A stretch of DNA of 64,000 nucleotides from Trichosphaerium sp. ATCC 40318. Taxonomy: Eukaryota; Protista; Tubulinea. The notes beneath the pieces are model-generated. The model searched no databases, was not told the origin of the DNA, and was given only the letters and a program-made list of their open reading frames with translations. Positions 32,054 to 51,330 of the stretch are shown here, one piece after another (within the stretch, counting starts at the first letter, position 1; the number at the start of each line of letters is the position of its first letter). Location: the NCBI GenBank assembly GCA_038496445.1, contig JALMLS010000093.1, positions 310,001 to 374,000 on the forward strand, read 5' to 3'. Position numbers and translations under genes: made by a program.

Positions 32054-33289
32054 ATGGCTTCATTATTTGCATACAATTGCCTTAAAAAAGGTTACAACGC
32101 TTTAATGTACGCCTCCGGCTTCATAACATACCCGCTATTTCGTATTTGGCGATATTTCTTCCCTTACTCATCTTTCGGCAAAAAGGCTAGCGAAGGTACG
32201 TTCTTGTTGCGGCGCTTACAGCGTATATTGTATTTTTAGCATTTGTACCGTTGCTTTTGGACGGTTTTTCGTTTACGGTAGTACAAAACGGCCTATAAGA
32301 TTATACACAAGTGCTACGTTATGTTAACGTTATTATTCCTAGATATAGTACATTATTATCCAAACGGAAGGCTGCAAATCAAGATTGAAATGAAGAATGG
32401 AGTTGCTAATGGTAAAAGGATAGAATGGTACAAGAATGGTAATAAAAAGAAGTATTGTGAAGTAGAGAATGGTATAAACCAAGGAAAAACAATAGAGTGG
32501 CATGAGAATGGAAATAAAAGAACAGAAAGCTATTATGTTAATGGAAAATGTAACGGACTAACCAAGTTTTACCATAAGTCAGGGTACTTACTTAATGAGT
32601 TCACAATGAAAGATAATAAAATCCATGGATCTTATTCAATATATTGGCCAAATGGTACAGTTCTAGAGAGAGGTACAATGGACGAAGGAAAGAAGAATGG
32701 TAAAGTTGAAAATTACCATAAAAACGGAAAAACAAAACAAATAGCACAGTACAAAGATGGTGTAGTTTCTGGTCTTGTAAAAGAATTTTACCAGGATGGA
32801 GTATTTTCAGGAGAATGTAATTTTGTTGATGGTCAAAAACAAGGTGTTCTGAAAAAATTCCATCGTAATGGTAACCTTAACATTGTCCAAACATTAGAAA
32901 AAGGAAAGAAATCTGGAGAATCAAAGAAATTTTATCCAGATGGTTCTCCAATGAGTTTGGAGTATTATGACCCTCCTGATATTAAACATGGTGAACACAA
33001 GTATTGGTATAATGATGGACAACTCAAAAGTCGTTCCATGTATGAACACGGGACAAAAGTCGGTGAGTTTATCCAGTACTTTGCAAATGGACAACTTGCT
33101 ACAAAATGCGTTTATGATAAGTCAGGTTATTTACATGGTAATGCAAAGATATGGTTTTTATCTGGTGGATTGAATAAAGACTACAATGCAATCCATGGTA
33201 AAAGGCACGGATCTTATAAAGAGTGGAAGGAAGACGGGTCAATCGCTATTGATTGTGTCTATGAGAATGGTAAAGTTAAAATACAATAA
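32054..33289 (+). CDS. MORN-variant repeat protein (about 13 repeats)
   Basis: Long exon of YxNG.....Y.NG..xG repeats; short first exon at 32054. Confidence 0.85.
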
Positions 33290-33469: not shown

Positions 33470-33990
33470 GTGACTCCGTTACAAATGCGATGCCTAATCA
33501 AGTTGCCATTGTCTCTCCATTCCTTGTACTCACTCTCTATCTAACAGTTGATGTAATGACACTGCTTACTCAATACACCATTTTGATGCCACTCATTATG
33601 CTCCCCTTCTTTCTTACCATCAACATAATAGCGCACAATTGCCATTGGCGTACCATTGTACTCGCCTCCTAGCTAATCATTGTATTGACATTGCTCATGC
33701 AATTGTCCATTTTGGTGCCAGCTCTTGACCTTGCCTTGGCATTCACCATTGACGAAATTACGTTGCTGTTTCAGTTGATCTTTCCTGACCATTCTCTTTC
33801 TTACCTTCTTTTTTTCCGCTGTAATTTGTATGTTAAATAACCACTTCTAAACCATACGCTGCTGCACTCCTTCTAAGGTACCATTTATGTACGGATACTG
33901 AATCCATAGATTACTGTTTTGATAGTGTACATTTAACATAAACTTCTGAGTCTAAATCTACAATATCAAGCTTTAGTTCAACTGTAAGTA
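33470..33990 (-). pseudogene. Pseudogene of the F-box-like/MORN family
   Basis: LTVELKLDIVDLDSEVYVK, then KSWHQNGQLHEQCQYND* and EWHQNGVLSKQCHYINC*, with in-frame stops and frameshifts. Confidence 0.75.
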
Positions 33991-34201
33991 CTAATACATG
34001 ACAGTTATCCATTTTAATCTTGTGTGTATGACTACTCGTAGTTGATGCTATTCATGAATTTGCTAGTGACAAACATACATTTGACTTCTAATTTATAAGC
34101 TCACAAACCACAATAAATGAGTCACGTGAAAAAGAATTAGTTTTATTTTTATGAAATGATAGCAGCAACATGATTCTGTCGCACAACTTGATGTGGTTGT
34201 T

Positions 34202-37200
34202 TTAATTGTTTGCAATCCACTGCATCTTCAAAGTGAGTTCGCCACTTGTAATCTATGAAAGTAAAGCTTTAGTTAGTGACACAAATTGAGGAAAATATTT
34301 TGACGTAACTGGGTATTTCTTTTTGGCACGTTTTTGAGGATCAGAGAGTTCGAAAGTACGGGAAAATGATCCTGCAGATTGTTTCTCGATAACATCACTT
34401 GAGATTTTTATCTCAGATTGTCCCATGAATGTACCAACTCCAAATCTACTCCAATGCGAGCAAACCACATTGATGGTTTCTTCAGAATTACATTCTCTTT
34501 AGAAAGAAACAACAAATTAGCACAAGTAATAAAGTGTTTTAGAAAATCAGTGTCGAGTGTATCTATCGTACATTTCAATTTCTTTCTTCCATTTAGGCGC
34601 CTTTATTTTTTTCACGTGTGAAGTGATAGCTCCTTTAATCTCTTCGCCATTTGAACGTTCAAAATAAACTTGAGGACAAGTCTTATTATTCTCTAAATAA
34701 TGATTAAAACAAATACTCGGCCATTGAACAATCTCAACGAAAATTATAATTGTTGACGTACTCTCTACTGCTACCAAGCTTTTTCCTCTTATCTCGGTTA
34801 TCTTCAAAATCCCTTGAATTGGTTCAGGTTCTTGCTCTATTTCACTTGTGGCGTATGTGACAAGGTCATCAAGCTTGTCTATTGTCTAAGTAGAATACTT
34901 AGAAAAAAAACCAATCATTGCAGATGTTTTTATCTTTGTCAAGACATACAAGCACATCAGTAAGCTCAGCTTTCTTTGCCTGTGGCTCCAAAACGGCTGG
35001 ATCGTCACAGAAGAATCTAAGTTCATTCTTCCATCCTAATTCGTTCTTAACTTTCTTGATGAGATCCATCTTTTCTTCAATTTCTTCTGTATGTTCATCA
35101 GCCACTGGAACAAAGTATAGTTAGTATTATGATAGTATAAAAATTTACTGTACAGAAATGAGCTAGAATACGTATACTCCTAAAAAATTGGTGTTAGCCA
35201 TGCAATGATGTATAGAAAAGGGTTGCACTACTTTTCGTGAATGTATGATTTTTGTGATACGAAAATTGGTGTAAAAAATCACCAAAAAAATAATTAGAGA
35301 AAGTTTGGAACAGTAGTGCAGGCTTCAATATTTGAATGAGTTAACAAAATACCCTGCTTGGTTTCCAATGTTTTTGTTTTTCTCAATTACGTCGGCAGCC
35401 CATTCTATTGAAGCTATTTTACAAGAAAGTTAATAACAGCCTTTGAAAGAAACCAAAAAAAGAACGTAATCATACTATCAAACTTTTCTGCATCATCATT
35501 GTCGTCAAAGTCAATCCAACGTGCTACAACAATGCCATTATTTTGAATCTTTCGAATAGCTTCCTATTAAAACAGATCAATCAAAAAAAAATCACGTGAC
35601 AGTTTTTTTTTTTTTTTCAAGACTTAATTAACGTACATCAACCTCATTTCCATACGAGTCACCAATCCATAAAAGTGTCACACAGCGACAGTACCTAAAT
35701 AACCTTAGCGATTCCAATAACAATACCCAAAATGTGTGGTATTGTATTCACTCACGTGGTCAGGTACTTCTCACGTGATGATGCAGCAGCATTTGGATGA
35801 GCAGATATGGTTTCATCATCAATCAAATTTTTCTTTACACTTTTTAAATGCTTGTTTGAGGTGTACACCATAACCGGCACCTACAGCTGTTAACAAACTT
35901 TTCTCTACCGTGTCTCTTAATTAAGGAACGTTTGCTTACTTTGATGTCTTCTGTTAAGAGCTGTTGTATGAGATACTTGTAAGCATCATCTTCGTCTGCC
36001 TGATCTTTGTCCAATGGATGGTTTTTGTTACAAATTAGCCTCTAAATATCGTTTCAGTATATGAGCTTAGAAAGACCTCACGTACCCAACGCCACATAGC
36101 TGATACATCTCTAGCCTCAGGACGGAAAGCCATGAGATCCTGGAACACCTAAATCGAAAGAGTTTAGAAGAGACAACCAATATTTAAAAAACCGTTTTGT
36201 TTTCATCCGTACTTCTGTGTAGCATGTACGTTGTACGATAACTACGTTCTTTGTATCCTTCACAATCTTTTTTATGGTAGCATCTGTGCAAAGAAAGATA
36301 AGCAAAAATATAAAACTATTTTATTTCATTTGAAAGCTGAAGCAGGTTTTTTGGATAGAAAAAAAAAAATCACGTGTTAGAGGCAAAAAATTTGAGTTTA
36401 GTTTAAAGGTGTAAAGACATACCATTATTTTCTGGGTGAGGATCAAGCCACGTGATAAGTCTAGAGGAGTATTAGTGCGACTCGTAATTATATCTGGTGG
36501 CGGCAGATATAAAAAAAAGTTCGAGTTTGTGTACTGAAGGTCTTTGTCTTCTTTGATCATTGACATCAATCCCTCCTCTTTATGCACTAGTTCGATGTGT
36601 AAGTAATAAAACGATTGAATACACTTTTTGGAGCTTACTAAACATATCGTGGACTTCACGACGTGATGTCGCTCTCATTACGTCACCGTCGCTTGACAAG
36701 CTGAGCGAACCAACCAAAAGTGTCTGAACTGTGTCTGTCAATCTGTCGTCCATATTCTAACTGCTGTTAGTAACAAAGTAGACAATGCATTTGCTTCAGT
36801 ACAAAAAAGTCATCGTTAGCCGATTGAAGAGCAAATATTTTTCCAAACATGTTGTTTTTAGTGAACTTGCTGATAAAAGCAAGAGCCTCTTCGCTGATTT
36901 GCTGTAATTTCTTCAAAGGAGGTAGTGGCGAGTCTAACATTCTTATCATCCGTTGTTTTTTATCATCTGCAATAAAATCTTGTTAGTTATGGTTGAAACA
37001 GGTTTAAACGTCACCTTGTAAAATATCATTGAGGCTGTTGAATCGGGTTACAATATGAGAACATAGCTTCTTATTATGCTTTACGTCGTCAATAATACTA
37101 TTAAGGTTCTCAACCAACTTGTTAATCTTCTTTAGAGTGTCATCAACATCCTTCATGACTGTTTCTTTGTCAGGTTTGTCTACAGGTTTGCCTTCAGGTT

Positions 37201-39074
37201 CTCTGATTTCCACAACAACAGGAGGTTTAGGTGCATCTATTGTTCTTTTTTTGGTTTTTCGCTTTGGCGTTGGTGTTATCTGTTGTAACTTATAATCGTC
37301 TAGATTGTATCCGAACATGTTTGCGAGTTTGGTTGGTGTTATAGATGACTCACTCTTTACTGTAGTCGATGCCCCTAAAAAAATGTCAGCAACAGAAATC
37401 AAAGACATTGAACCAGCAGTACCTTTAGCGAGCAAGAAAATAATAACTGCTTCATTTTTTGCTGCAATAGCATAGAACAGCGGAGTATCTCCTCTATTGT
37501 TTGTAGCTTCTAGTGATGCGCCTTTTTCAAGAAGAATCTTTGCGTTTTCGATAGTACCACGTGCTGCTACCAAATGAAGTGCAGTTTCTCCGTCTTGATG
37601 ACACAGTTGAGTTTTTTTCTTTTTCGTTTATTGAGACGTACATGTAGTTTTTCCATCAGGTCCTAGTGTAGCTAGAGTATACTCAAAGACAAACATCCCT
37701 GGTTGATATGCATTATAAACTCCGTTACGTTGAGTGTAAAACTGAGAATTAGCTAATCATTAGTTAGTACAGATCCACAAACAAAAAAAAACCACGTGTA
37801 CATTGAAACTGTGTCCCTGGGAAAAGATTAGTTTGACTGTCGGTAGCATCCAATGGGCGATAGTAGATATCATCCATTGGTGTACCAATAGCTTTACAAA
37901 ACCGTGAGAATGTATAAAAAAGCAGTTTGCTGTACCCATAGGTTCCACATTGGTTGTTGTCTCTCTATAATACGTTACTAATACAGTATTGGAATATCCT
38001 TGCACTAGTGCGACAATTAACAGAATGATCTAGAGGAACAAATAAAACGCACCAGCTTGTACGAACATTCCTAATTTCATGGGATCGTCATAGACTGGCA
38101 TTTTTATTTTAGGAATAAAAGAAGTGTTAGCATTGTCTACCTCAACGGGTGTAATTTCGCTGTTGCTGTTTTCTTCGACAAAATATACACTGCAAGGAGG
38201 GATAAATCTTGCTCCTCCAATCATTTGAGCTAGTAGAATATTTAGAAAATTATAACTTCGTATCACGTGATAGAAATCAAAAGTGTAATAACCAACATGA
38301 ATAAATGATTTACGTTACTGACTGTACACTGAGTACCAAGTAAAAAACGTACTTGTTACAGACTCTCCACATTTTATTCTTGGGTGCGATAAGAATTCTA
38401 TACGAGGCGGCATTACACTACATCCTGTATTAACAGTCAGGGTTATGTAATAACTTGTAAACACTTTACCTATCCAATCACTTGCTGTTATTCTCACTTG
38501 TAATATCACCAACGGATTCGTGTTACCGTGCTATAACTCTTAAATGGAAGATACAAAACAAACAAGCGTACCATTTTATGACACACATAAAACTCAAGAA
38601 GACACTTCATGTCAGACTGAGTACCATTAAAAGTTTTTAGGCCTAAAATACTATTAGTTTATTACATTGGTTTAAACAGGTAGCAACGCTTACCTATCTG
38701 TAACGCATCATAGCAAGCGATTCCATGATAAAAATGTCTCTCGTACGGTGAAAGCGCAAATTCTAATGTTTAGAGCACGTGATTAAGAGAAAAACTTGAA
38801 AAACTAAAAAGTTCACCGTACTATCTTCTAACGACAACTGTCGCGTTGGATGGCTTTCTTTGGGTGTTATGACGCATATTACATAGTAATCCGCCTCGTT
38901 TAAGCTCTTGTTGGTCTAAACTAGCGTCAATACTATAAAAAAACAATCTCACGTTACCAGTCTGATTTGAGGTGGGTCCAAAAAAATTTTTGTACCACAA
39001 ATCTCGGTTCCACGGAAGTTTATGGGCGTTTGTATGTTGTCTGAAGAGAGTAATTCCGCAATGGGCTCAGACAT
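34202..39074 (-). CDS. Gene A (left copy): variable N-domain + ankyrin + MLKL-like four-helix bundle + receiver-like alpha/beta region + C-terminal C2 domain
   Basis: Starts MSEPIAELL; DGETALHLVAARG/GDTPLFYA (ANK); VKHNKKLCSHIVTRFNSLNDIL...ISEEALAFISKF (4HB); GILKITEIRGKSLVAVE...TFMGQSEI...SGELTLKMQW (C2). Confidence 0.75.
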
Positions 39075-39274
39075 TTTCTTTATGCTTTGTATCTTGTAGA
39101 GAGACAGATAAATGGCTCTCAATAAGTCTCACGACTCGAGCCGTTTTTACTGCGACTTATCCATTAAAATGTGTACCTTTATTTCAAAAGGAACTATTAT
39201 AATAACGCAACCACAACACTTGGTATCACTAACAAACATTATGCTAAACACTAACATTAATTAGAAGCTTACAA

Positions 39275-40576
39275 ATGGCAAACGTTGAAGTGGGTAAATT
39301 GATTATAGACAGAGCCAACGACTTCAAGCAGTGGAATCCTTGCATACCTCCTCGATTTTTTGGTGGTACGTCGTACCGCTTATTGCTTTTACCGTAATTT
39401 GTTCATTCAATAAAATCTACTAGATGGAGATACGGCGCTTCATTGGGCTGCGTTGAACGGTGTTAAAACAATACTAATAGATAATATTGACAGAATAGAT
39501 GTTAACCACGCTAACAATAACGGTGAGACTCCATTACATTTAGCCGCGGCGAATGGAGACGTATGGATAATCAAGTTTCTTGTGGAAAAAGGCACGTGAT
39601 AATTTTTTTTCGTCTTTTTTTTCGCTTGAACCGCGATCTTAAAGTACTTTAGGCGCCAGGTCTAGTAAAACAAATAATGGCAAGACGCCTGAAGAAATCG
39701 CGAAACAAGCACACAGGGAAGACCCACAACTATTAGCGAAAATTCTACAAGCGTTATGGCCTTGTCCCGTGCGTAGAGAAATACAAGAACAACATCAAAT
39801 GAATCACCTCGCCACCGCAATGGCGACAAGCGACGATCCTATGGAATTCACAACAAACTGTAAGTTCACTGAAATACAAGAAAAACCCTGAGATGTGTTA
39901 ACAATTATTAGTTCCACCGCATGTCAAGGCGAATGAATCTAGCCCTGAAGAATGCAAGTACATGTACGCAAAAACGGTAACGCAAGTGAGGAATAAGGTA
40001 CGAACGACCTCTAAGAACAAAGTACACTGAAAGTTGTTGTAAACTAACTGTAACTTTAGTCACCAATTGTATGGAATAAAAAGGCTGTAGACAAAAATGA
40101 TGAAGAAAGGGAACCAATCACTTTTTCTTTACGTACAGGCGTAAATTACGAATGTTATGTTTCCGGCAATCCAAAACTCAAAAAAGATAAATTTGATGCT
40201 TGCTCTTTTTATTGTGCCGATGAAGGTATTAATAATGATCATGCACAAAATGGTCTTAAGATAAATCAGTGGTTCACTTGTGGTGAAGATGATGATAGCA
40301 TTGGGTATAATATTTTGCTTGCTTTCGCTTTTCCTGGAGAGTACTTTGCTACATTCCGGAACAAGGACACTAATGAAATAGTATGCTTGATTAAGATATA
40401 CGTTACAAGTTGTCGACCTGCCAAACACGTGGACACAAGTGATCATATTGTGATATGTACTTCCAAAACAGATATAAGAACAAAGCATGAAGAAAAAGTA
40501 AAGGAGTTGATAGTAAGTTGTTTTTTTTCTTTTTACTTACTTTTTGGTCTTTGACTTATTTCAAAAATAGGCTTAA
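39275..40576 (+). CDS. Gene B (left copy): ankyrin repeats + uncharacterised C-terminal domain (3' end approximate)
   Basis: DGDTALHWAALNG, NGETPLHLAAANG, NGKTPEEIA; C-domain ...GYNILLAFAFPGEYFATF... Confidence 0.75.
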
Positions 40577-40939
40577 AAATGCGGCAAAGAAACAAAGAAA
40601 GTGCCCTTTAAAAAAACACTAGTAATTGCAACAGTTATTGATAGAAATGGATGCCCAGGACGAACACCAGCAAACACTTTCCAGCCTTTGATATGCGCCA
40701 CTTTCCGCAAGACATACCTGTCAATTGTGGAAAAAAACGCAGAGATAATAATAAGATTTATAAAAGCAACACTTTGTTTCGGTTATTTACAGCTCGCAAA
40801 CGATTAATTATTATGGGACACTTTACTTTTTCTTAAACCTTTTGGTAGCACGTGGACTATTACCCAAGTTACTTGCAGTGCGCTAGAAAAAAACAGAATA
40901 AGCACAATAAGGGATGCAAAAAAAAACCAGAAAATCAAT

Positions 40940-42843
40940 CACGATAAAAAAATTAAAAGTTGTGTATTCTGTCGTCCACGTGAGAGCTACATCTAAACAT
41001 ACCTTTTTAAAACCTTTATTGTTCTTCTTAGGAGAAGGTTTTGCAGCAAAGAAAGAAGTTATACGCCCTTGAGTGCTACTTTTTCTTGTTTTCTTAAGTC
41101 TTGCAATACCTAAACAAAAAAAATCAATAATAGCTTCAACGAAGTGTCAAACGCCTCTTGAGATACAATTGCAAATTATACAATAATATATCGTTTGAGA
41201 TGGTTTACTAGCACATACCAGACTTAATTCTATCTTCCGAGAAGCCATTCTTTTCGCACATGAACTTCAAAATAGCTTCTTCGTCACATTCATCCCAAGA
41301 TACTTTACATTCCTCATCGACTTCAGGTTTCTACATTAAACCCCATTAGAACAAAACCCCTTTGATGTATTTTGTAGATAAACAAGACCTCTATACGTAC
41401 ACGAAAGTATTCTCTGATTTGTTCAAAAGGGTAGTATTCCGGAACCTTGTACTTTTGTTTATCAATCTTTTTTAGAATAGTGTCAATGTCGCCCCATTTT
41501 CTGATCAAGCTTAAAGCCGTCTTTGGTCCAATACCACGAATCTTTTCGCAATAATCACAACCAAGTAATATACATAAATCAATAAACTAAAACCAACAGG
41601 TAAGCCTTAAATAAAGGAAAACAACTGAGCATAAAAAAAAAAAGAAATAAAAAAGAGTAAAACATCAAAGGCGACTGCAAGGAACGGTAGGCCCTATACA
41701 CGCGAAATATTTTCTACCAATGACCAAGACACTGTTGATAAAGAATTCTTGATATAATTTCTAACAGAAAGTTCGTACCGAGTCCATTGTGATGCCAAAA
41801 CCCTCAAGAACTTTGTCCATATGAATTTCCATAACAGGCATTTTGCGAGCAGGACTGAAAGTTAAATGACGCAACAATAATGGTGTTCCAAGAGTAAGTG
41901 TATCCATATCTTCAGATCCAGCACCCCATACCTAATTTTAAACATCAAAAAAACGCGTTATTTCAAAGAAAAAAAAAAAGTTAAAACCTGTAATTTTTCA
42001 GCCTTAATGATGACATTATCGTACCTTTCCTTGTTGTACCATAACTGCACATTGTGCTTCAGCCTCACAAGGAGCCTAAGCGCCGTTAATAATACGCAAG
42101 GTTGCAAAAAACGGTTTTTTTAAAAATGTTCTTAACCGCTGTCTTTTATGTCGTACCTCGATAACTGGAATACCCATAAGGCGTAAAAGCGTCTTTGCTT
42201 GCTCATTGTGTTTTTTTGTTACTTTAACAGTTCTTTTGGCGGCTTTTTGAATTGCTTCTTTATCACCGAGGTCTTTTGCGTCAGCAAGCTCGTTTTGCGC
42301 TTTATTTCTTTTTTTCGTTCTTTTAGCGAGCTAGTATTCGCAAGTAAGTAAACTTGATTGCAGTACAATTAAACATTAAATGCTATCCCTTGACGCTATC
42401 ACATACCTCACCAGTCTTCAAAGAGAATGGTTTACCATCAAAAACGTAAGCAGGCTTAATTCCTGTTACAAGTTAGGTTTTTTTACGTCTTGAGCGTTAT
42501 AACGAACCATTTTCCATCATTCTAATAGATCTGTAGAACATACCAGACAAATGACTGTTTGTAACATTTAGAAGAAAAGTAACGTTAAAGCTTTCGTAAG
42601 TGCCTTGTAGGTTCTCCGTCAGCGTTTGTGAGGTTATATTGACCGCTATCATCGCTTCTTATTTGTATTAAAAATTGGTAGAGAACCATAGACGCGTCAA
42701 TAGCTACTTTACGGCCTACGACAATACGTTTTAATAAACAAATCGATTAGAAGAATCTAACCGAAATAATTTTTTATGTCATGCTCTTTTATAGCATCAG
42801 GCGCATGTTCGCGTATCAAATTAGTTAATCCAAGAATTCCCAT
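40940..42843 (-). CDS. FEN1: Flap endonuclease 1 (3' end approximate)
   Basis: [72 protein letters not shown] box QGRITSFF. Confidence 0.96.
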
Positions 42844-42858
42844 GAGCAGTTGTTTGTA

Positions 42859-42866
42859 TTCCCGCC
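42859..42866. promoter_or_regulatory. E2F-like site just upstream of the FEN1 ATG
   Basis: TTCCCGCC ~16 bp before the start of a replication gene. Confidence 0.4.
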
Positions 42867-43024
42867 AGTAAAGTCTTATTTAACAAAATCAAACTTGTTT
42901 CAGGATTTCAGTTGACCGAAAGAAAAACGTGCGTTCTCGCTTCAAAAAAAATACTATGGCGTAAGCTATGTCGATTGGCAACGCTTACGCATGTCGTTTA
43001 CTGTAAGTTGGTTACAAAATCTCA

Positions 43025-43662
43025 ATGGCAACGAAACTCAAGGTACCTGTTTCAAAACGTTTGCTAGTGCTAAGAAACACGATAAATAGATTCCCACCGA
43101 GAAATTGAAACGTTGCGGTCTGTTTCATCTTCCTATGGAGCTACAGCTTGATATCTTCGATTTAGACTTTCAGGTGTACATTAAGTTACCACTGTTATCA
43201 AAATACGCTGCAACAATGTCAAGGTTTGATGCTGATTTAAAAAAACACGGAAAATGGCAGCAAATCAGAACGGAGTACAGTCCAAGTTATGAAAATAATA
43301 TAAAGAATGGTATAATGTTGAAACAGCAATGTTTCTATATACATGGTAAGCTAGAAGGAGAGTACAGGGTATGGCATGAGAATGGTAACTTGTACAAGGA
43401 GTATTACTTTGTAAATGGTAAACGTGAAGGTGAATATAAACAATGGCTTTATGGAGGTCAGTTGTATAAACAATGCAATTATATTAATGGAAAAAGGGAA
43501 GGAGAATGTAAATGGTTTTATTGCAATGGTAAATTGTTTGAACAATGTACTTTTATCAATGGCAAACGTGAGGGATTCTATAAGGTGTGGCATGATAATG
43601 GGCAACTGTGGGAAAAAGTAAGATATGTTAATGGTAAAAAGCAACAGACATACCTAGTTTGA
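43025..43662 (+). CDS. F-box-like + MORN-variant repeat protein (paralogue of 21079-21903)
   Basis: 6-codon first exon (MATKLK), LFHLPMELQLDIFDLD, RFDADLKKHGKW, MORN-variant repeats. Confidence 0.82.
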
Positions 43663-44273
43663 CTGTATCACTGAAAAACGCCACAAGGTTATGCATACCT
43701 TGAATACACAGGTTAAATATTCACAATTAGTCTTTCTTGAAATGATCGCAAATACTTTCTGACAGAATACTGTGATTATGAAGCGCTGCATGAGACGATG
43801 GATATGGATATCCTAAAGCTACCTAAAGGAGACTGTGATGATAAATGGGAATGTTGGTTTGTTAAACACTACTACTTGGCTTGGAGTCAGCATGTTAGTA
43901 AAACAATAAACCAAACTTACAAAACAAAATTCTTGTAGTACTTCCTACAAAGCCCACTAGAGCACTTGACGATTAATGATGAAAGATTAAAATAAACATA
44001 TTGCGACTTCCTTAATAAATAGTGATCGAGGATTTTTGGAACACTTTGTTCGAAATCTGGTTCGAAAATTTTTTTTTTCGAACAAATTAGTACCAAGTGT
44101 GCCATAAACGCTAGTCCTACAAACTCAAGTAGGGGAGTATCTTAAGGGACCACAGTCAAAGCTTAGTCCAGTTCAAAAAATCACCAGCTTTATTCAATGT
44201 TTTTATCACGTGATACAAAAAAAAAAAAGGGTTCAGACGTGTACAGTCCGTAAATTTGAGTGTGTTGCAATTA

Positions 44274-45628
44274 TTAGTGTTTTTTTAAAGGGCACTTTCT
44301 TTGTTTCTTTGCCGCATTTTTAAGCCTATTTCGAAATAAGTCAAAAACCAAAAAGTAAGTAAAAAGAAAAACAACGTACTCGTTTTGTGGTCCTCTTTTT
44401 CGATTCTTTCGCTCCTTTACTTTTTCTTCATGCTTTGTGCTTATATCTGTTTCGGAAGTACATATCACAATATGATCACTTTTATCCACTGTACAACCTT
44501 TGGCAGGTCGACAACTCGTAACGTATATCTTAATCAAGCATACTATTTCATTAGTGTCCTTGTTCCGGAATGTAGCAAAGTACTCTCCAGGAAAAGCGAA
44601 AGCAAGCAAAATATTATACCCAATGCTATCATCATCTTCACCACAAGTGAACCACTGATTTATCTTAAGACCATTGCCAGCATAATCATTATTAATACCT
44701 TCATCGGCACAATAAAAAGAGCAAGCATCAAATTTATCTTTTTTGCTTTTTGGATTGCCGTAAACGTCACATTTGTAATTTATGCCCTTACGTATAGAAA
44801 AGGTGATTTCTTTCCTGTTTCCCTTATTTTTGTCTACAGCCTTTTTATTCCATTCCATTGTTGCCTAAAGTTACATTTAGTTTACAACAACTTTCAGTAC
44901 TTTTTTCTTAAGAGGTCGTTCGTACCTTCTTCCTCACTTGCGTTACCATTTTTGCGTACATGTACTTGCATTCTTCAAAGCTAGTTTCAGTCGCCATGTC
45001 ATGTGGTGGAGCTAATAATTTTTAACGAGACCTCCTCCAGTTTTTCTTGTATTTCAGTGAACTTACTGTTTGTTGTGAATTCCATAGAATCGTCCCTTGT
45101 AGCCAATGGGGTGGTGAGGTGATTCGTTTGATGTTGTTCTTGTATTTGCGTTTCTGTATGCACAGGACAAGGCCATAACGCTTGTAGAATTGGGTATACG
45201 TTGCTGCTGTGGAAAACTTTCGCAATTTCTTCAGGCGTCTTGCCATTATTTGTTTTACTAGACCTGGCGCCTAAAGTACTTTAAGATCGCGGTTCAAGCG
45301 AAAGAAGACGAAAAAAAATTATCACGTGCCTTTTTCCACAAGAAACTTGATTACTGATAAGTCTCCATTCGCCGCGGCTAAATGTAGTGGCGTCTCACCG
45401 TTATTGTTAGCGTGGTTAACATCTATTCTGTCAATATTATCTTTAAGCAATTTTAAATCACCTCTCGAAGCAGCCCAATGAAGCAACGTATCTCCATCTA
45501 GTAGATTTTATTGAATGAACAAATTACGGTAAAAGCAATAAACGGTACGACGTACCACCAAAAAATGGAGGAGGTGCGTGAGCAGCTGCCTTCTTGACGA
45601 TTTCGGCTATAGCAAAAACGGTTGCCAT
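44274..45628 (-). CDS. Gene B (right copy): ankyrin repeats + uncharacterised C-terminal domain
   Basis: MATVFAIAEIV..., DGDTLLHWAASRG, NGETPLHLAAANG; same exon structure as the left copy. Confidence 0.75.
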
Positions 45629-45826
45629 TGTGGAAGCTTCTAATTTATGTTAGTGTTTAACATTACGTTTGTTAGTGATACCAAGTGTTGTGGTTGCGTT
45701 ATTATAATAGTTCCTTTTGAAATAAAGTCACATTTTAATGGATAAGCCGCAGTGAAACGGTTCGAGTCGTGAGACTTATTTAGAACCATTTATCTGTCTC
45801 TCTACAAGATACAAAGCATAAAGAAA

Positions 45827-48800
45827 ATGTCTGAGCCCATTGCGGAATTACTCTCTTCAGACAACATACAAACGCCCATAAATTTCTACGGCAGCGACCT
45901 GTGCTCTCAAAAAAACTTTTTGGACCCACCTCAAATCAGACTGGTAACGTGAGATTGTTTTTTTATAGTATTGACGCTAGTTTAGACCAACAAGAGCTTA
46001 AACGAGGCGGATTACTATGTAATATGCGTCATAAAACCCCAAGAAAGCCATCCAACGCGACAGCTGTCGTTAGAAGATTATATTGACGCGGGTACGGTGA
46101 ACTTTTTAGTTTTTCAAGTTTTTCTCTTAATCACGTGCTCTAAACATTAGAATTTGTCACTGCGCCTTCACCGTGCGAGAGACGTTTTGATCGTGGAATC
46201 GCTACCTATAATACGTTACGGATAGGTAAGCGTTGCTATCTTTTTAAACCAATGTAATAAACTAATAGTATTTTAGGCCTAAAAACTTATAATGGTCCTC
46301 AGTCTGACATGAAGTGTCTTCTTGAGTTTTATGTGTGTCATAAAATGGTACGCTTGTTTGTTTTGTATCTTCCATTTAAGAGTTATAGCACGGTAACACG
46401 AAACCGCTGGTGATATTACAAGTGAGAATAACAGCGAGTGATTGGATAGGTAAAGTGTTGACAAGTTATTACATAACCCTGACTGTTAATACAGGATATG
46501 GTGTACTGGCACCTCGCATAGACAGAATTTCGCACCCAAGAATAAAATGTGGAGAGTCTGTAATAAGTACGTTTTTTATTTGGTACTCAGTGTACAGTCA
46601 GTAACGTAAATCATTTATCATTTCGTTATTTCACTTGTACACTTTTGATTTCTATCACGTGATACGAAGTTATAATTTTCTAAATATTCTACTAGCTCAA
46701 ATGATTGCAGGAGTAAGACTTATCCCTCCTTGCCGTGTATATTTTGTCGCAGAAAACGGACAATATCAATACAAACTGTACCAAAATACTAACGCTTCGA
46801 ACATTACTGATATACAAATGCCAGTCTATACCGTTCCCATGAAATTAGGAATGTTCGTAGAAGCTGGTGCGTTTTATTTGTTCCTCTAGATCATTCTGTT
46901 AATTGTTGTCGCAATAGTACAAGGCTATTCCGATACTGTAGAAGTAACGTACGAAATCGATAGGATAACCAATCCGGTAAATATGGGTACAGACACATTC
47001 TTTTTTGTGTCCCATTCTAACAGCGGTTTATAAAGATATCGATATCGCATATCAACCAATGGATCCCAACCAGCCTGAATACCCAATGACACAGTTTCAA
47101 TGTACACGTGGTTTTTTTTTTCTGCTTGTGAATCGTACTAACCAATGATTGATTAGATGCTTCTCCGTTTTACACTCAACACGGCGGAGTTAATTACAAT
47201 TATCAACCAGGAGGTTATCCGTTTGGGTATACTCTGGCTACACTAGGACATGATGGAAAAACTATACGTACGTCTCAATAAACGAAAAAGAAAAAAACTC
47301 AACTGTCAGCAAGATGGAGAAACTGCACTTCATTTGGTAGCAGCACGTGGTACTATCGAAAACGCAAAGATTCTTCTTGAAAAAGGCGCATCACTAGAAG
47401 CTACAAACAATAGAGGAGATACTCCGCTATTCTATGCTATTGCAGCAAGAAACGAAGGTGTTCTTATTTTCTTGCTCGGTAAAGGTACTGCTTCAATGTC
47501 TTTGATTTCTGTTGCTGATATTTTTTAGGGGCATCGACTACAGTAAAGAGTGAGTCATCTATAACACCAACCAAACTTGCAAACATGTTCGGATACAATC
47601 TAGACGATTATAAGTTACAACAGATAACACCAACGCCAAAGCGAAAAACCAAAAAAAGAACAACAGATGCACCTAAACCTCCTGTTGTTGTGGAAATCAG
47701 AGAACCTGTAGTCAAACCTGAAGTCAAACCTGTAGACAAACCTGACAAAAAGACAGTCATGAAAGATGTTGATGACACTCTAAAGAAGATTAACAAGTTG
47801 GTTGAGAACCTTAATAGTAGTATTAACAACGTAAAGCATAATAAGAAGCTATGTTCTCATATTGTAACCCGATTCAACAGCCTCAATGATATTTTACAAG
47901 GTGAGTAAAATTGCCTCAACCTCAGCCATAACTAACTTATTTAAACAGATGATGAAAAACAACGGATGATAAAAATATCAGAATCACCACTACCCTCTTT
48001 GAAGGAACTAAAGCAAATCAGCGAAGAGGCTCTTGCTTTTATCAGCAAGTTCACTAAAAACAACATGTTTGGAAAACTACTTTCTCTTCAATCAGCTAAC
48101 GATGACTTTTTTGTACTGAAGCAAATGCATTGTCTACTTTGTTACTAACAGCAGTTAGGATATGGACGACAGATTGACAGACACAGTTCAGACACTTTTG
48201 GTTGGTTCGCTCAGCTTGCCAAGCGACGGTGACGTAATGAGAGCGACATCACGTCATGAAGTGCAGGATATGTTTAGTAAGCTCCAAAAAGTGTATTCAA
48301 TCGTTTTGTTACTTACACATCGAACTAGTGCATAAAGAGGAGGGATTGATGTCAATGATCAAAGAAGACAAAGACCTTCAGTACACAAACTCGAACTTTT
48401 TTTCTTTTCACAGCCACAACCAGATATAATTACGCGAGTCGCTCTAATATTTCTCTAGACTTATCACGTGGCTTGATCCTCACCCAGAAAATAATGGTAT
48501 GTCTTTAAACCTTAAAGTCAAATTTTTTTTGCTTGTCACGTGTTTTCTTTTTTCATTTCTTTGCACAGATGCTTCCATAAAAAAGATTGTAAAGGATACA
48601 AAGAAAGTAGTTATCGTACAACGTACATGCTACACAGAAGTACGGATGAAAACAAAACGGTTTTTTAAATATTGGTTGTCTCCTCTAAACTCTTTCGATT
48701 TAGGTGTTCCAGGATCTCATGGCTTTCCGTTCTACGGCTAGAGATGTATCAGCTATGTGGCGTTGGGTATGAGGTCTTTCTAAGCTCATATACTGACACG

Positions 48801-50652
48801 ATATTTAGAGGCTAATTTGTAACAAAAACCATCCATTGGACAAAGATTCGGCAGACCAAGATGATGCTTACAAGTATCTCATACAACAGCTCTTAACAGA
48901 AGACATCAAAGTAAGCAAACGTTCCTTAATTAAGAGCCACGGTAAAGAAAAGTTTGTTAACAGCTGTAGGTGCCGGTTATGGTGTACACCTCAAACAAGC
49001 ATTTAAAAAGCGTAAAAAAAACTTTGATAAATGATGAAACCATATCTGCTCATCCAAATGCTGCTGCATCATCACGTGAGAAGTATATGACCAAGTGAGT
49101 GTGGATAACAAATGAGAATGCTATTTTTTACGATCGTTAATTTTTTTTAGGTATTGTCACTGTGCGACACTTTTATGGATTGGTGACTCGTATGGAAATG
49201 AGGTTAATGTACGTTAAGTCTTTGTAAAAAAAAAAACTGTCACGTGATTTTTTTTGATTGATCTGTTTTAATAGGAAGCTATTCGAAAGATTCAAAATAG
49301 TGGTATTGTTGTAGCACGTTGGATTGACTTTGAAGACGATGATGATCCAGAAAAGTTTGATAGTATGATTACTTTCTTTTTTCGGGTTTCTTTCAAAGGC
49401 TGTTATTAACTTTCTTGTAAAATAGCTTCAATAGAATGGGCTGCCGACGTAATTGAGAAAAACAAAAACATTGGAAACCAAGCAGGGTATTTTGTTAACA
49501 CATTCAAATATTGAAGCCTGCACTACTGTTCCAAACTTTTCTCTAATTCCCTAATATTTTTTTGGTGATTTTTTACACCAATTTTCGTATCACAAAAATC
49601 ATACATTCACGAAAAGTAGTGCAACCCTTTTCTATACATCATTGTGTGGCTAACACCAATTTTTTTTAAGGAGTATACGCATTCTAGCTCATTTCTGTAC
49701 AGTAAATTTTTATACTATCATAATACTAACTATACTTTGTTCCAGTGGCTGATGAAGATACAGAAGAAATTGAAGACAAAATGGATCTCATCAAGAAAGT
49801 TAAGAACGAATTAGGATGGAAGAATGAACTTAGATTCTTCTGTGACGATCCAGCCGTTTTGGAGCCACAGGCAAAGAAAGCTGAGCTTACTGATGTGCTT
49901 GTATGTCTTGACAAAGATAAAAACATCTGCAGTGATTGTTTTTTTTTCTAAGTATTCTACTTAGACAATAGACAAGCTTGATGACCTTGTTACATACGCC
50001 ACAAGTGAAATAGAACAAGAACCTGAACCAATTCAAGGGATTTTAAAGATAACCGAGATAAGAGGAAAAAACTTGGTAGCAGTAGAGAGTACGTCAACAA
50101 TTACATTTTCGTTGAGATTGTTCAATGGCCGAGTATTTGTTTTAATCATTATTTAGAGAATAATAAGACTTGTCCTCAAGTTTATTTTGAACGTTCAAAT
50201 GGCGAAAAGATTAAAGGAGCTATCACTTCACACGTGAAAAAAATAAAGGCGCCTAAATGGAAGAAAGAAATTGAAATGTACGATAGATACACTCGACACT
50301 GATTTTCTAAAACACTTTATTACTTGTGCTAATTTGTTGTTTTCTTTCTAAAGAGAATGTAATTCTGAAGAAACCATCAATATGGTTTGCTCGCATTGGA
50401 GTAGATTTGGAGAGGATACATTCATGGGACAATCTGAGATAAACATCTCAAGTGATGTTATCGAGAAACAATCTGCAGGATCATTTTCCCGTACTTTCGA
50501 ACTCTCTGATCCTCAAAAACGTGCCAAAAAGAGATACCCAGTTACGTCAAAATATTTTCTTCTCAATTTGTGTGTCACTAACTAAAGCTTTACTTTCATA
50601 GATTACAAGTGGTGAACTCACTTTGAAGATGCAATGGATTGCAACCAGTTAA
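45827..50652 (+). CDS. Gene A (right copy): variable N-domain + ankyrin + MLKL-like four-helix bundle + receiver-like region + C2
   Basis: Same exon chain as the left copy; ends ITSGELTLKMQWIATS*. Confidence 0.75.
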
Positions 50653-51199
50653 AAACAACATGGCTGTACACGTGTTTTACTCCGTTACAGACGTTTGGGT
50701 AAACTTCAGTTGACTTCGTATAAATCAACAACAACAACAAACTACAAAGCTTAAACAACATGGCGAGCAGCAATCACCACATCCCAAAAATTTCCTTTTC
50801 AATCTGTTTTTTTATAAAACTGTAAAAACCTTTTATTTTCCAAGTGTTCTTGTATAATATAACAAATGCTTGGCGCTTACGCTAGAGCCACAAGACATTT
50901 TGTCTTCCTCCCAACATCGTCTTAGTTAGTGTTCCTTGGTTAGTTGATAGAAGAAAGTCAACTGAGAGTGTTAGAACTCTAACATCAACCACATCAAGTT
51001 GTGCGACAGAATCATGTTGCTGATATCATTTCATAACAAACATAAAAATAAAACTAATTGTTTATCACGTGACTCATTTATTGTGGTTTGCGTGGGCTTA
51101 TAAATTACAAATGTATGTTTGTCACTAGCAAATTCATGAAACGAATTAAAACATGGAAAGTGACGATATTATGGTCTCTGCGTCATGATAGAACTGCAT

Positions 51200-51330
51200 T
51201 TTGGTATCAAAACAGTAATCTATGGATTCAGGATCCGTACATTAACGGTAAGTTAGAAGGAGTGCAGCGTATGTTTAAAAAGTGGTCATTTGCAAAACGA
51301 CAGATTTTAACAAAGTCAAATCAATCTTGA
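51200..51330 (+). pseudogene. MORN-variant relic at the outer end of the right arm
   Basis: WYQNSNLWIQDPYINGKLEGVQRMFKKW, mirrored at ~33840-33925. Confidence 0.6.

Follow-up and report, generated by a model that had tools for sequence, protein, structure and literature searches.

Recognition systems diversifying under selection have been described from animals, plants, fungi and dictyostelids but, to our knowledge, hardly at all from most other protists. In plants, NLRs occur as head-to-head pairs of a sensor and a helper, such as RGA4/RGA5 or RRS1/RPS4. The Dictyostelium allorecognition genes tgrB1 and tgrC1 are adjacent, divergently transcribed and rapidly diversifying, and they encode transmembrane surface proteins with an Ig/IPT fold. 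Helical bundles of the MLKL and HeLo type execute membrane-targeting cell death, and C2 domains bind membranes. Fungal het/allorecognition pairs and wtf poison-antidote families are intracellular, linked and fast-evolving, show non-allelic gene conversion, and are plausible where cells fuse. In concerted evolution of the MHC type, the introns and non-recognition exons of linked paralogues are homogenised, a few segments diverge far above their neighbouring introns, and within these selected segments dS is elevated as well. Gene conversion between paralogues in close linkage has been described as a general process (PMC5470263).

The locus described here lies in a 64-kb window (the whole stretch of DNA that was analysed, 64,000 nucleotides) of an intron-rich protist. 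A cassette of two genes has truly been duplicated there in inverted orientation; it is expressed, and all four genes are intact. Specifically, two inverted arms of ~6.35 kb each, one copy of the A-B cassette per arm, surround a 3.6 kb spacer.

34250 to 40650: left arm with genes A1 and B1, defined by inverted-repeat pairs and the arm alignment; beyond its ends at ~34250 and ~40650, identity is at background
34202 to 39074, minus strand: gene A1, 29 exons, 1024 residues, intact; model transferred from A2, exons 9-11 being reconstructed manually
39075 to 39274: common A1/B1 intergenic (promoter) region, 200 bp between the start codons, 94% identical to its right-arm counterpart
39275 to 40621, plus strand: gene B1, 6 exons; the strong donor gives 340 residues with a stop at 40576
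40651 to 44259: unique spacer with FEN1 (minus strand, ~41326-42746) and a MORN-repeat ORF (43090-43659, plus strand)
44260 to 50600: right arm with genes B2 and A2, defined by inverted-repeat pairs and the arm alignment
44274 to 45628, minus strand: gene B2, 6 exons, 359 residues, with a basic C-terminal tail
45629 to 45826: common B2/A2 intergenic (promoter) region, 198 bp between the start codons; an RNA contig starts at 45815
45827 to 50652, plus strand: gene A2, 29 exons, 1028 residues, intact

The arms are linked by 25 inverted-repeat pairs of 80-100% complementarity, and ~44260-50600 aligns with 40650-34250 at 88% identity over 6501 columns (gap columns scored as differences). The repeat boundaries are the stop codons of A and B, the two genes are duplicated only as a unit, and a search within the 64-kb window found no further cassette copies beyond the two arms. 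The inverted duplication is real, and the original prediction of a close linkage of A and B, with divergent transcription and copying as one unit, is borne out. The gene ends it proposed also stand, with start codons of A at 39074 (minus strand) and 45827 (plus strand), start codons of B at 39275 (plus strand) and 45628 (minus strand), and ends of A at 34202 and 50652.

Long-read assemblies do contain inverted false duplications, and alleles could differ by the few percent that separate the arms; the arms might accordingly be two alleles or haplotypes of one A-B locus misjoined as an inverted repeat. We regard such an artefact as highly improbable. The arms enclose the unique 3.6 kb spacer, in which the FEN1 gene (Pfam XPG_N, XPG_I and 5_3_exonuc) and the MORN gene (MORN_2) are intact, and the outer flanks differ between the two arms. 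Immediately downstream of the stop codon A1 and A2 have unrelated 3' ends, and the 3' end specific to A1 occurs in RNA. Letters specific to A1 and letters specific to A2 are both present in RNA contigs from runs of a 2015 and a 2024 study, with run X2 carrying mostly A1 letters and runs X1 and X3 carrying both.

Both copies of A are transcribed and spliced, as is B. In both copies of both genes the frames are open and the GT..AG introns are conserved. In A, 19 splice joints are backed by RNA contigs, and in B the chain of exons 3, 4 and 5 is. The joints of A2 from 47264/47316 to 50540/50602 come from RNA contigs; its exons 1-10 were predicted from conservation relative to A1 together with the reading frame and GT..AG sites, and for exons 8-10 these boundaries lack RNA confirmation. 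For A1, the ends of RNA contigs agree perfectly at 37717 and 37454, those at 34209 and 38167 have one mismatch each, and the spliced exon 10/11 junction is present in RNA. Variant letters of the RNA on A2 are the A1 base at 31 of 40 sites. An RNA contig of B2 joins exon 3, an 87-nt stretch that is not on the arm, and exon 5; the modelled exon 4 is 86 nt. In B1, a weak alternative donor would append a basic tail ending at 40621. The RNA runs contain essentially the same two copies as the genome, with scattered single differences only.

The differences between the arms cluster in coding patches, as predicted, and do so much more strongly than chance would give: the arms share an unbroken identical stretch of up to 158 nt, whereas in 2000 shuffles the longest run averaged 57 nt and never exceeded 109 nt, and the dispersion index is 9.1. 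The most variable segments are as follows.

37642 to 38424, minus strand: hypervariable exons 6-10 of A1, ~residues 140-315
38970 to 39014 (exon 1) and 38694 to 38830 (end of exon 2 to exon 3), minus strand: smaller patches of A1
46495 to 47267, plus strand: hypervariable exons 6-10 of A2
45887 to 45931 (exon 1) and 46080 to 46225 (end of exon 2 to exon 3), plus strand: smaller patches of A2
39275 to 39365, plus strand: exon 1 of B1, a variable N-terminal peptide of 30 residues
45556 to 45628, minus strand: exon 1 of B2, a variable N-terminal peptide of 24 residues

In this single comparison of two cis copies, exons 1-10 of A differ at 158 of 922 bases (17.1%) and introns 1-10 at 27 of 528 (5.1%; odds ratio 3.8, Fisher p = 5e-12). 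The relation is reversed in the C-terminal part, where exons 11-29 differ at 82 of 2135 bases (3.8%) and introns 11-28 at 93 of 1168 (8.0%; odds ratio 0.46, Fisher p = 9e-7). Exons 6-10 are 70-82% identical, and introns 5-10 are 92-98% identical except for intron 8 (74%). The same pattern is found in B. Identity is 68.5% in its exon 1, whose copies differ by 18 nt in length, and 88.4% in its exon 2, compared with 98.3% for intron 1 and 97.9% for intron 2. Both genes thus carry exon-limited hypervariable patches on a homogenised background, a pattern to be expected of a co-evolving recognition pair.

Through non-allelic gene conversion between the arms, the introns, the promoter and the last 700 residues of A stay nearly identical, and selection acts on defined coding patches, either blocking their homogenisation or driving them to change. 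The patches so selected are the N-domain of A and, in B, exon 1, the ankyrin helices and the middle part. In the hypervariable exons of A, dN and dS are each ~0.2-0.36, with a ratio of 0.8-1.2; one variable patch has 14 nonsynonymous and 0 synonymous changes. Because dS is raised within the variable patches (0.2-0.7, compared with 0.06 elsewhere), positive selection on point mutations alone does not explain them; the patches must either preserve old divergence shielded from conversion or have been imported from paralogues not seen here.

DGR-like adenine-targeted mutagenesis was considered and rejected, as all four bases are changed, in both copies.

The locus is also a clear natural case of conversion in very short tracts, in which introns of 40-60 nt stay identical between exons that are 15-30% diverged.

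The copies could be ordinary young paralogues, with patches that are loosely constrained, fast-drifting loops of no recognition role and with the rest homogenised by conversion. The ratio dN/dS over the whole N-domain of A is ~1.0, not clearly above 1, which agrees with such drift and counts against a recognition role. A ratio of 0.5-0.7 even in the conserved part of A (0.56 over the rest of the protein) suggests weak constraint, and the family is an orphan of no known function. However, drift cannot give exons that are 3.4 times more diverged than the interleaved introns of 40-130 nt, and elsewhere in the same A gene the introns diverge twice as fast as the exons. Net length differences between A exons (12, 6, 6, 12 and 12 nt) are all multiples of three and keep the frame, and transitions drop from 65% of changes to 40% in the variable exons. 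B shows the same pattern independently, with dN/dS of 1.4-1.9 over residues 109-230. On this evidence, relaxed paralogues seem an unlikely explanation. With modest confidence, we favour the reading that the cassette is a fast-diversifying intracellular recognition module, with two specificities held in cis on a gene-converted background.

The pattern of divergence most resembles concerted evolution of the MHC type. As in that case, the paralogues are linked, the introns and presumptive non-recognition exons are homogenised, a few exons exceed their flanking introns, and dS is raised inside the selected segments. The differences are that A and B are unrelated proteins, intracellular and without an Ig fold, that two different paired genes diversify together, and that two cis copies are compared here rather than a population of alleles.

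The arrangement of the genes is reminiscent of the plant NLR pairs. A and B diverge from a short common promoter on opposite strands, are inherited and duplicated as a unit, evolve fast, and include one large multi-domain partner. The other partner, B, is a small ankyrin protein, and the pair has no NB-ARC, NACHT, Walker A or LRRs. Specifically, a search for the Walker A motif in A1, A2, B1 and B2 found none, and Pfam scans of the pieces returned no NTPase family. For want of an NTPase motif the pair does not qualify as NLR-like, and membership of the NLR/STAND class was rejected.

A and B are like tgrB1/tgrC1 in being neighbouring protist genes that are transcribed divergently and diversify rapidly. 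In contrast to tgrB1/tgrC1, they have no membrane span (the highest 19-residue hydropathy in A or B, 1.57, lies within an ankyrin helix), no obvious signal peptide on reading of the N-termini, and no common domain that we detected. For the first two reasons A and B look intracellular and are probably soluble proteins, and a surface receptor reading was rejected. Pfam found no Ig or IPT match in the pieces of A and B scanned. For the C-terminal domain of B, weak Ig-like hints in an Atlas language-model search all scored below 0.8, and an AlphaFold model from a two-sequence alignment had a pLDDT of 34.

Protein A begins with a beta-rich N-domain (~residues 1-310) and ends in a C2-like C-terminus; between the two lie, in order, the ankyrin repeats, a linker that is basic and proline-rich, a helical region and an alpha/beta region. 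In B, a short peptide at the N-terminus precedes the ankyrin repeats, which a linker connects to a beta-rich C-terminal domain. The alpha/beta receiver-like units originally proposed for A gained no support from any of the tools; no internal sequence repeat was found in A, and no similarity between A and B beyond the ankyrin repeats. Three regions of A bear on its possible action.

47314 to 47484 in A2, plus strand (37593-37423 in A1): ankyrin-coding exon 11; Pfam Ank_2, Ank_4 and Ank, 41-48 bits
47760 to 48276 in A2, plus strand: helical region proposed to be MLKL-like, ~residues 445-590, comprising the end of exon 12 and exons 13 and 14
49965 to 50652 in A2, plus strand (34885-34202 in A1): exons 26-29, C2-like C-terminus

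The Pfam scans were run on single exons or pieces, and the helical, alpha/beta, C2 and N-domain regions of A each span several small exons. Of the domains originally proposed for A, the ankyrin repeats are clear, with 47.7 bits for Ank_2 in A (cut-off 27.3); B likewise reaches 63.8 bits for Ank_4 (cut-off 22.7). The C2 assignment is weakly supported, and two separate pieces point to it. Exon 28 of A2 matches Pfam C2 (PF00168, cut-off 22 bits) at 15.8 bits (E 0.017, profile positions 62-97), with no match from the A1 piece, and the Atlas search with exons 26-27 returned C2-family clusters for 80 of 100 named matches, at a low score of 0.70. The MLKL-like assignment stays below threshold: the only MLKL signal is a match to MLKL_N (PF22215, cut-off 27 bits) from exon 13, with 15.9 bits in A2 (E 0.0096, profile positions 48-94) and 12 bits in A1 (E 0.15). 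An independent piece of the same region, the exon 12 helices, gave generic helical matches only in the Atlas search. Residues ~735-835 of A, encoded there by exons of 9-51 residues, may resemble a dead PTEN or dual-specificity phosphatase core; no HCX5R motif was found, and a PDB search with the 29-residue exon 22 gave no PTEN match.

Compared with MLKL, HeLo and RPW8 executioners, A has a helical region of ~150 residues for which MLKL_N is the best Pfam match, and a C2-like domain in the same protein. On the other side, the match is sub-threshold, A carries no kinase-like, amyloid or NLR module for activation, and the bundle is not N-terminal but internal (~residues 445-600 of 1028), after the N-domain, ankyrin repeats and linker.

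The original prediction took A and B to be cognate partners that match as lock and key, in the roles of sensor and executioner or of poison and antidote, with the arms as two specificities. The helical bundle and C2 domain of A would attack membranes unless restrained by a matching B, or when triggered by a non-matching B. In a plasmodial organism, such a pair would be a post-fusion incompatibility system. Consistent with this proposal, A and B both diversify in patches and are duplicated only as a unit, the absence of a membrane span and obvious signal peptide fits a post-fusion system, and A has the weak MLKL_N match and C2-like signals; a literature search found no cloned slime-mould fusion-incompatibility gene. 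Against it stand the sub-threshold MLKL_N scores in both copies, the featureless second helical piece, the internal position of the bundle, and the extra assumptions demanded by two possibly cross-reactive pairs in cis. We therefore judge the cognate pair improbable, and a lock-and-key or death function of A and B is a conjecture. A more specific version, in which A and B discriminate self from non-self, mismatch between the N-domain and the B surface frees the helical and C2-like part of A against membranes, and two specificities are held in cis, appears decidedly unlikely. The fungal het pairs and wtf families resemble the cassette in being intracellular, linked, fast-evolving and subject to non-allelic gene conversion; no sequence relationship to them was found, and the domain make-up of A and B is different.

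A and B appear to form an orphan family, with no relative detectable with the pieces searched. HMMER with exon 12 of A against 1.84 billion representative proteins gave two low-complexity matches only. A word-indexed protein search with the B C-terminal domain and the ORF of A exon 12, using a length window that left out full-length A, returned nothing. The same two pieces found no homologue in metagenome loci, and the B C-terminal domain found none in viral loci. PDB sequence searches with four pieces gave nothing useful, and an exact-ORF look-up of the adjoining MORN gene, aimed at other assemblies, returned no record.

Under the favoured reading of an intracellular recognition module, the variable patches of A and B would be the recognition surfaces. 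A would sense through its N-domain and act at a membrane through its conserved helical, alpha/beta and C2-like part, and B may be a co-regulated partner or a regulator of A. Candidate targets are a pathogen, the cytoplasm of a conspecific, or B itself, and the output may be death or otherwise.

The locus shows the population-genetic signature of a recognition system without the need for homology, namely exon-limited diversity on a gene-converted background, in both members of a linked pair. A and B are thus a concrete two-gene candidate recognition system from a family without detectable relatives. If the host cells fuse, the locus gives entry to the genetics of somatic incompatibility. If the self/non-self reading were true and the host were a plasmodial slime mould, the locus would be a candidate for the genetically defined, uncloned fusion and lethal-incompatibility loci, and A would represent a death-effector architecture without a described relative.

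The locus comprises two oppositely oriented copies of a head-to-head ankyrin gene pair, designated A1/B1 in the left arm and A2/B2 in the right arm. The window is eukaryotic in character, with a GC content of 36%, many short GT..AG introns, and no long ORFs. RNA-derived contigs from three public runs (X1–X3) were placed on 44651–50650; they cover both genes and define 19 GT..AG joints, from 47264/47316 to 50540/50602. Exons 11–29 of A2 follow the RNA joints, while exons 1–10 were modelled from splice sites, reading frame, and conservation, with the boundaries of exons 8–10 set without RNA support. The gene models are as follows.

Gene A1, 39074–34202, minus strand: intact, 1024 aa; A2 model projected on the left arm, with exons 9–11 rebuilt by hand
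Gene A2, 45827–50652, plus strand: 29 exons, 1028 aa
Gene B1, start at 39275, plus strand: 6 exons
Gene B2, start at 45628, minus strand: 6 exons

All introns of A1 are GT..AG. In the left arm, 200 bp separate the A and B start codons, and in the right arm 198 bp; the models of both arms agree with the start coordinates of the original prediction, which was made from the sequence alone. The acceptor of gene A intron 8 differs by copy: the intron is modelled as 37 nt in A2 (46987–47023) and 44 nt in A1 (37935–37892), with no RNA joint. In gene B, exons 3 and 5 are joined in one RNA contig through an 87-nt stretch, where exon 4 of the model has 86 nt. The 3’ ends of B1 and B2 (40480–40621 and 44274–44420, respectively) differ through an insertion or deletion at the final donor site. 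Specifically, B2 ends in a basic, NLS-like tail, while B1 stops a few residues past the donor and reaches the tail only via a weak GTTGAT donor; as judged from these predicted tails, the two proteins may differ in localisation.

A repeat search found 25 inverted-repeat pairs, collinear and with 80–100% complementarity. MAFFT alignment of the arms shows that ~44260–50600 is highly identical to 40650–34250, with only background identity beyond these ends. The 3.6-kb spacer between the arms is unique sequence. The spacer and the regions flanking the arms contain the following features.

FEN1 (flap endonuclease), intron-containing, 41326–42746, minus strand: XPG_N, XPG_I, and 5_3_exonuc matches
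MORN-repeat ORF in the spacer, 43090–43659, plus strand
MORN-repeat ORF flanking an arm, 32321–33289, plus strand
MORN-repeat ORF flanking an arm, 33676–34051, minus strand
MORN-like ORF, 51073–51327, plus strand: by eye only, with no match in Pfam

Two of the MORN ORFs share a similar N-terminal motif (33914–34051 and 43090 onward). The MORN ORFs may represent an older local gene family, within which duplication of the A-B cassette then took place. If the arms recombined, FEN1 would be inverted and no gene broken.

The borders of the repeat very nearly coincide with stop codons, those of A at the outer ends (34202 and 50652) and those of B at the inner ends (40576–40650 and 44274). The flanks 3’ of the repeat, including the sequences 3’ of the A1 and A2 stop codons, are unrelated between the arms. 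The match of borders reflects either the limits of the original duplication or homogenisation restricted to the coding unit; duplication of the cassette strictly as a unit is well supported. A third copy of A or B was not found in the window by tblastn with the four proteins as queries.

The two arms could instead be misassembled alleles of one locus. Where the RNA contigs depart from A2, 31 of 40 variant letters are the exact A1 base, and where contig ends disagree with A2 they are perfect matches to A1 at 37717 and 37454. Contig ends also match A1 with one mismatch each at 38167 and at 34209 (A1’s own 3’ end), and the spliced exon 10/11 junction of A1 is present in RNA. Other contigs follow the A2 letters, e.g. 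X1 at 47977–48011. Because of this copy-specific RNA evidence, the unrelated 3’ sequences of A, and the unique spacer, misassembly of alleles is unlikely. The two gene copies in the RNA strains are essentially those of the genome. The mismatches at 38167 and 34209 are single-base differences between RNA contigs of a 2024 study and genome A1, one of them changing a Pro codon to an Arg codon within a hypervariable patch, a slight indication that strains vary.

A1 and A2 proteins are 84% identical overall and ~95% identical over residues 316–1024, with differences concentrated at residues 21–35, 71–100, and 140–315. B1 and B2 diverge most strongly in exon 1, whose encoded peptides practically do not align, and also at ankyrin helix positions and residues 109–230. 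In exons 1–10 of A, 158 of 922 bases differ (17.1%), compared with 27 of 528 (5.1%) in introns 1–10 (Fisher test, odds ratio 3.8, p = 5e-12). Exons 11–29 show the ordinary pattern, differing by 3.8% versus 8.0% for introns 11–28 (Fisher p = 9e-7), and A introns are therefore not generally constrained. Several A introns of 41–59 nt are 96–100% identical, sandwiched by exons that are 70–86% identical. Similarly, B exons 1 and 2 are 68.5% and 88.4% identical, while introns 1 and 2 are 98.3% and 97.9% identical. Net length differences between A1 and A2 exons (12, 6, 6, 12, and 12 nt) each keep the frame. The differences are clustered (dispersion index 9.1), with uninterrupted identity extending over as much as 158 nt, compared with a mean longest tract of 57 in shuffles. 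The clustered coding differences on a near-identical background that had been predicted are thus borne out and sharpened by the exon–intron contrast.

Nei-Gojobori estimates for the A N-domain are dN 0.199 and dS 0.192, with one patch carrying 14 nonsynonymous and 0 synonymous changes, while the remainder of A has dN 0.034 and dS 0.060. Residues 109–230 of B have dN/dS of 1.4–1.9. Transitions account for 40% of the changes in variable exons versus 65% elsewhere. A DGR-like mechanism is excluded by the absence of adenine bias. Neutral drift as the source of the variable exons does not fit, since it does not yield a 3.4-fold higher divergence in exons than in the intervening introns. Concerted evolution, combined with selection that favours divergence of defined surfaces of A and B, is well supported by these comparisons of the copies. 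Arm-to-arm conversion would even out whatever selection permits; the variable patches would escape conversion, with dN and dS both rising, as in MHC binding-site exons. Alternatively, the patches could be imported from unseen paralogues.

Domain searches were run on pieces, A being split into 29 small exons. Ankyrin repeats, as predicted for A, are certain by Pfam in both A and B, and are the only similarity between the two proteins (31% identity over ~100 aa). For the predicted C-terminal C2 domain of A, two separate pieces point to C2: exon 28 gives a Pfam match below cut-off (E 0.017), and 80 of 100 named Atlas matches of exons 26–27 are C2-family clusters, with a low score (0.70). A probably ends in a C2-like domain. 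The case for the MLKL-like domain is weak: a single exon matches MLKL, scoring 15.9 bits (A2) and 12 bits (A1) below a cut-off of 27, adjoining helices give only generic helical matches, and the helical region lies inside the protein, in contrast to true executioner bundles. The proposed alpha/beta “receiver-like units” find no support, and A has no internal sequence repeat. The alpha/beta region itself lies upstream of the C2-like domain.

Conserved alpha/beta region of A2, 48569–49900: exons 17–25, with motifs in exons 21–25 (residues ~735–835)

These residues may resemble the core of a PTEN or dual-specificity (DSP) phosphatase that would be dead, having neither the catalytic Cys nor the Arg. 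The linker of A is basic and proline-rich. Profile and sequence searches of pieces gave no match for the A N-domain or the B C-domain; the latter shows faint Ig-like hints, and its AlphaFold model is unusable (pLDDT 34). Neither a hydrophobic span, a Walker A motif, nor an active phosphatase motif was found in A or B, and no signal peptide was seen on reading their N-termini. Both proteins look soluble and intracellular. The searchable pieces found no A/B homologues, and a literature search found no cloned slime-mould incompatibility gene.

Having no NTPase motif, the pair is not a paired NLR; nor is it a surface pair of the tgr kind, since both proteins lack a membrane span and any obvious signal peptide. 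A lock-and-key or cell-death system, as originally proposed, is compatible with the data, though not directly supported by them, and its MLKL pillar is weak. We infer that the cassette serves as a recognition module inside the cell, in which the A N-domain would act as sensor, the conserved C-terminal part of A would be the membrane-directed portion, and B would be the partner of A. The original observation is thus largely confirmed, with the exon–intron result added, and its interpretation is partly supported: the locus would be a linked, diversifying recognition pair, a known kind of system, built on an orphan architecture.
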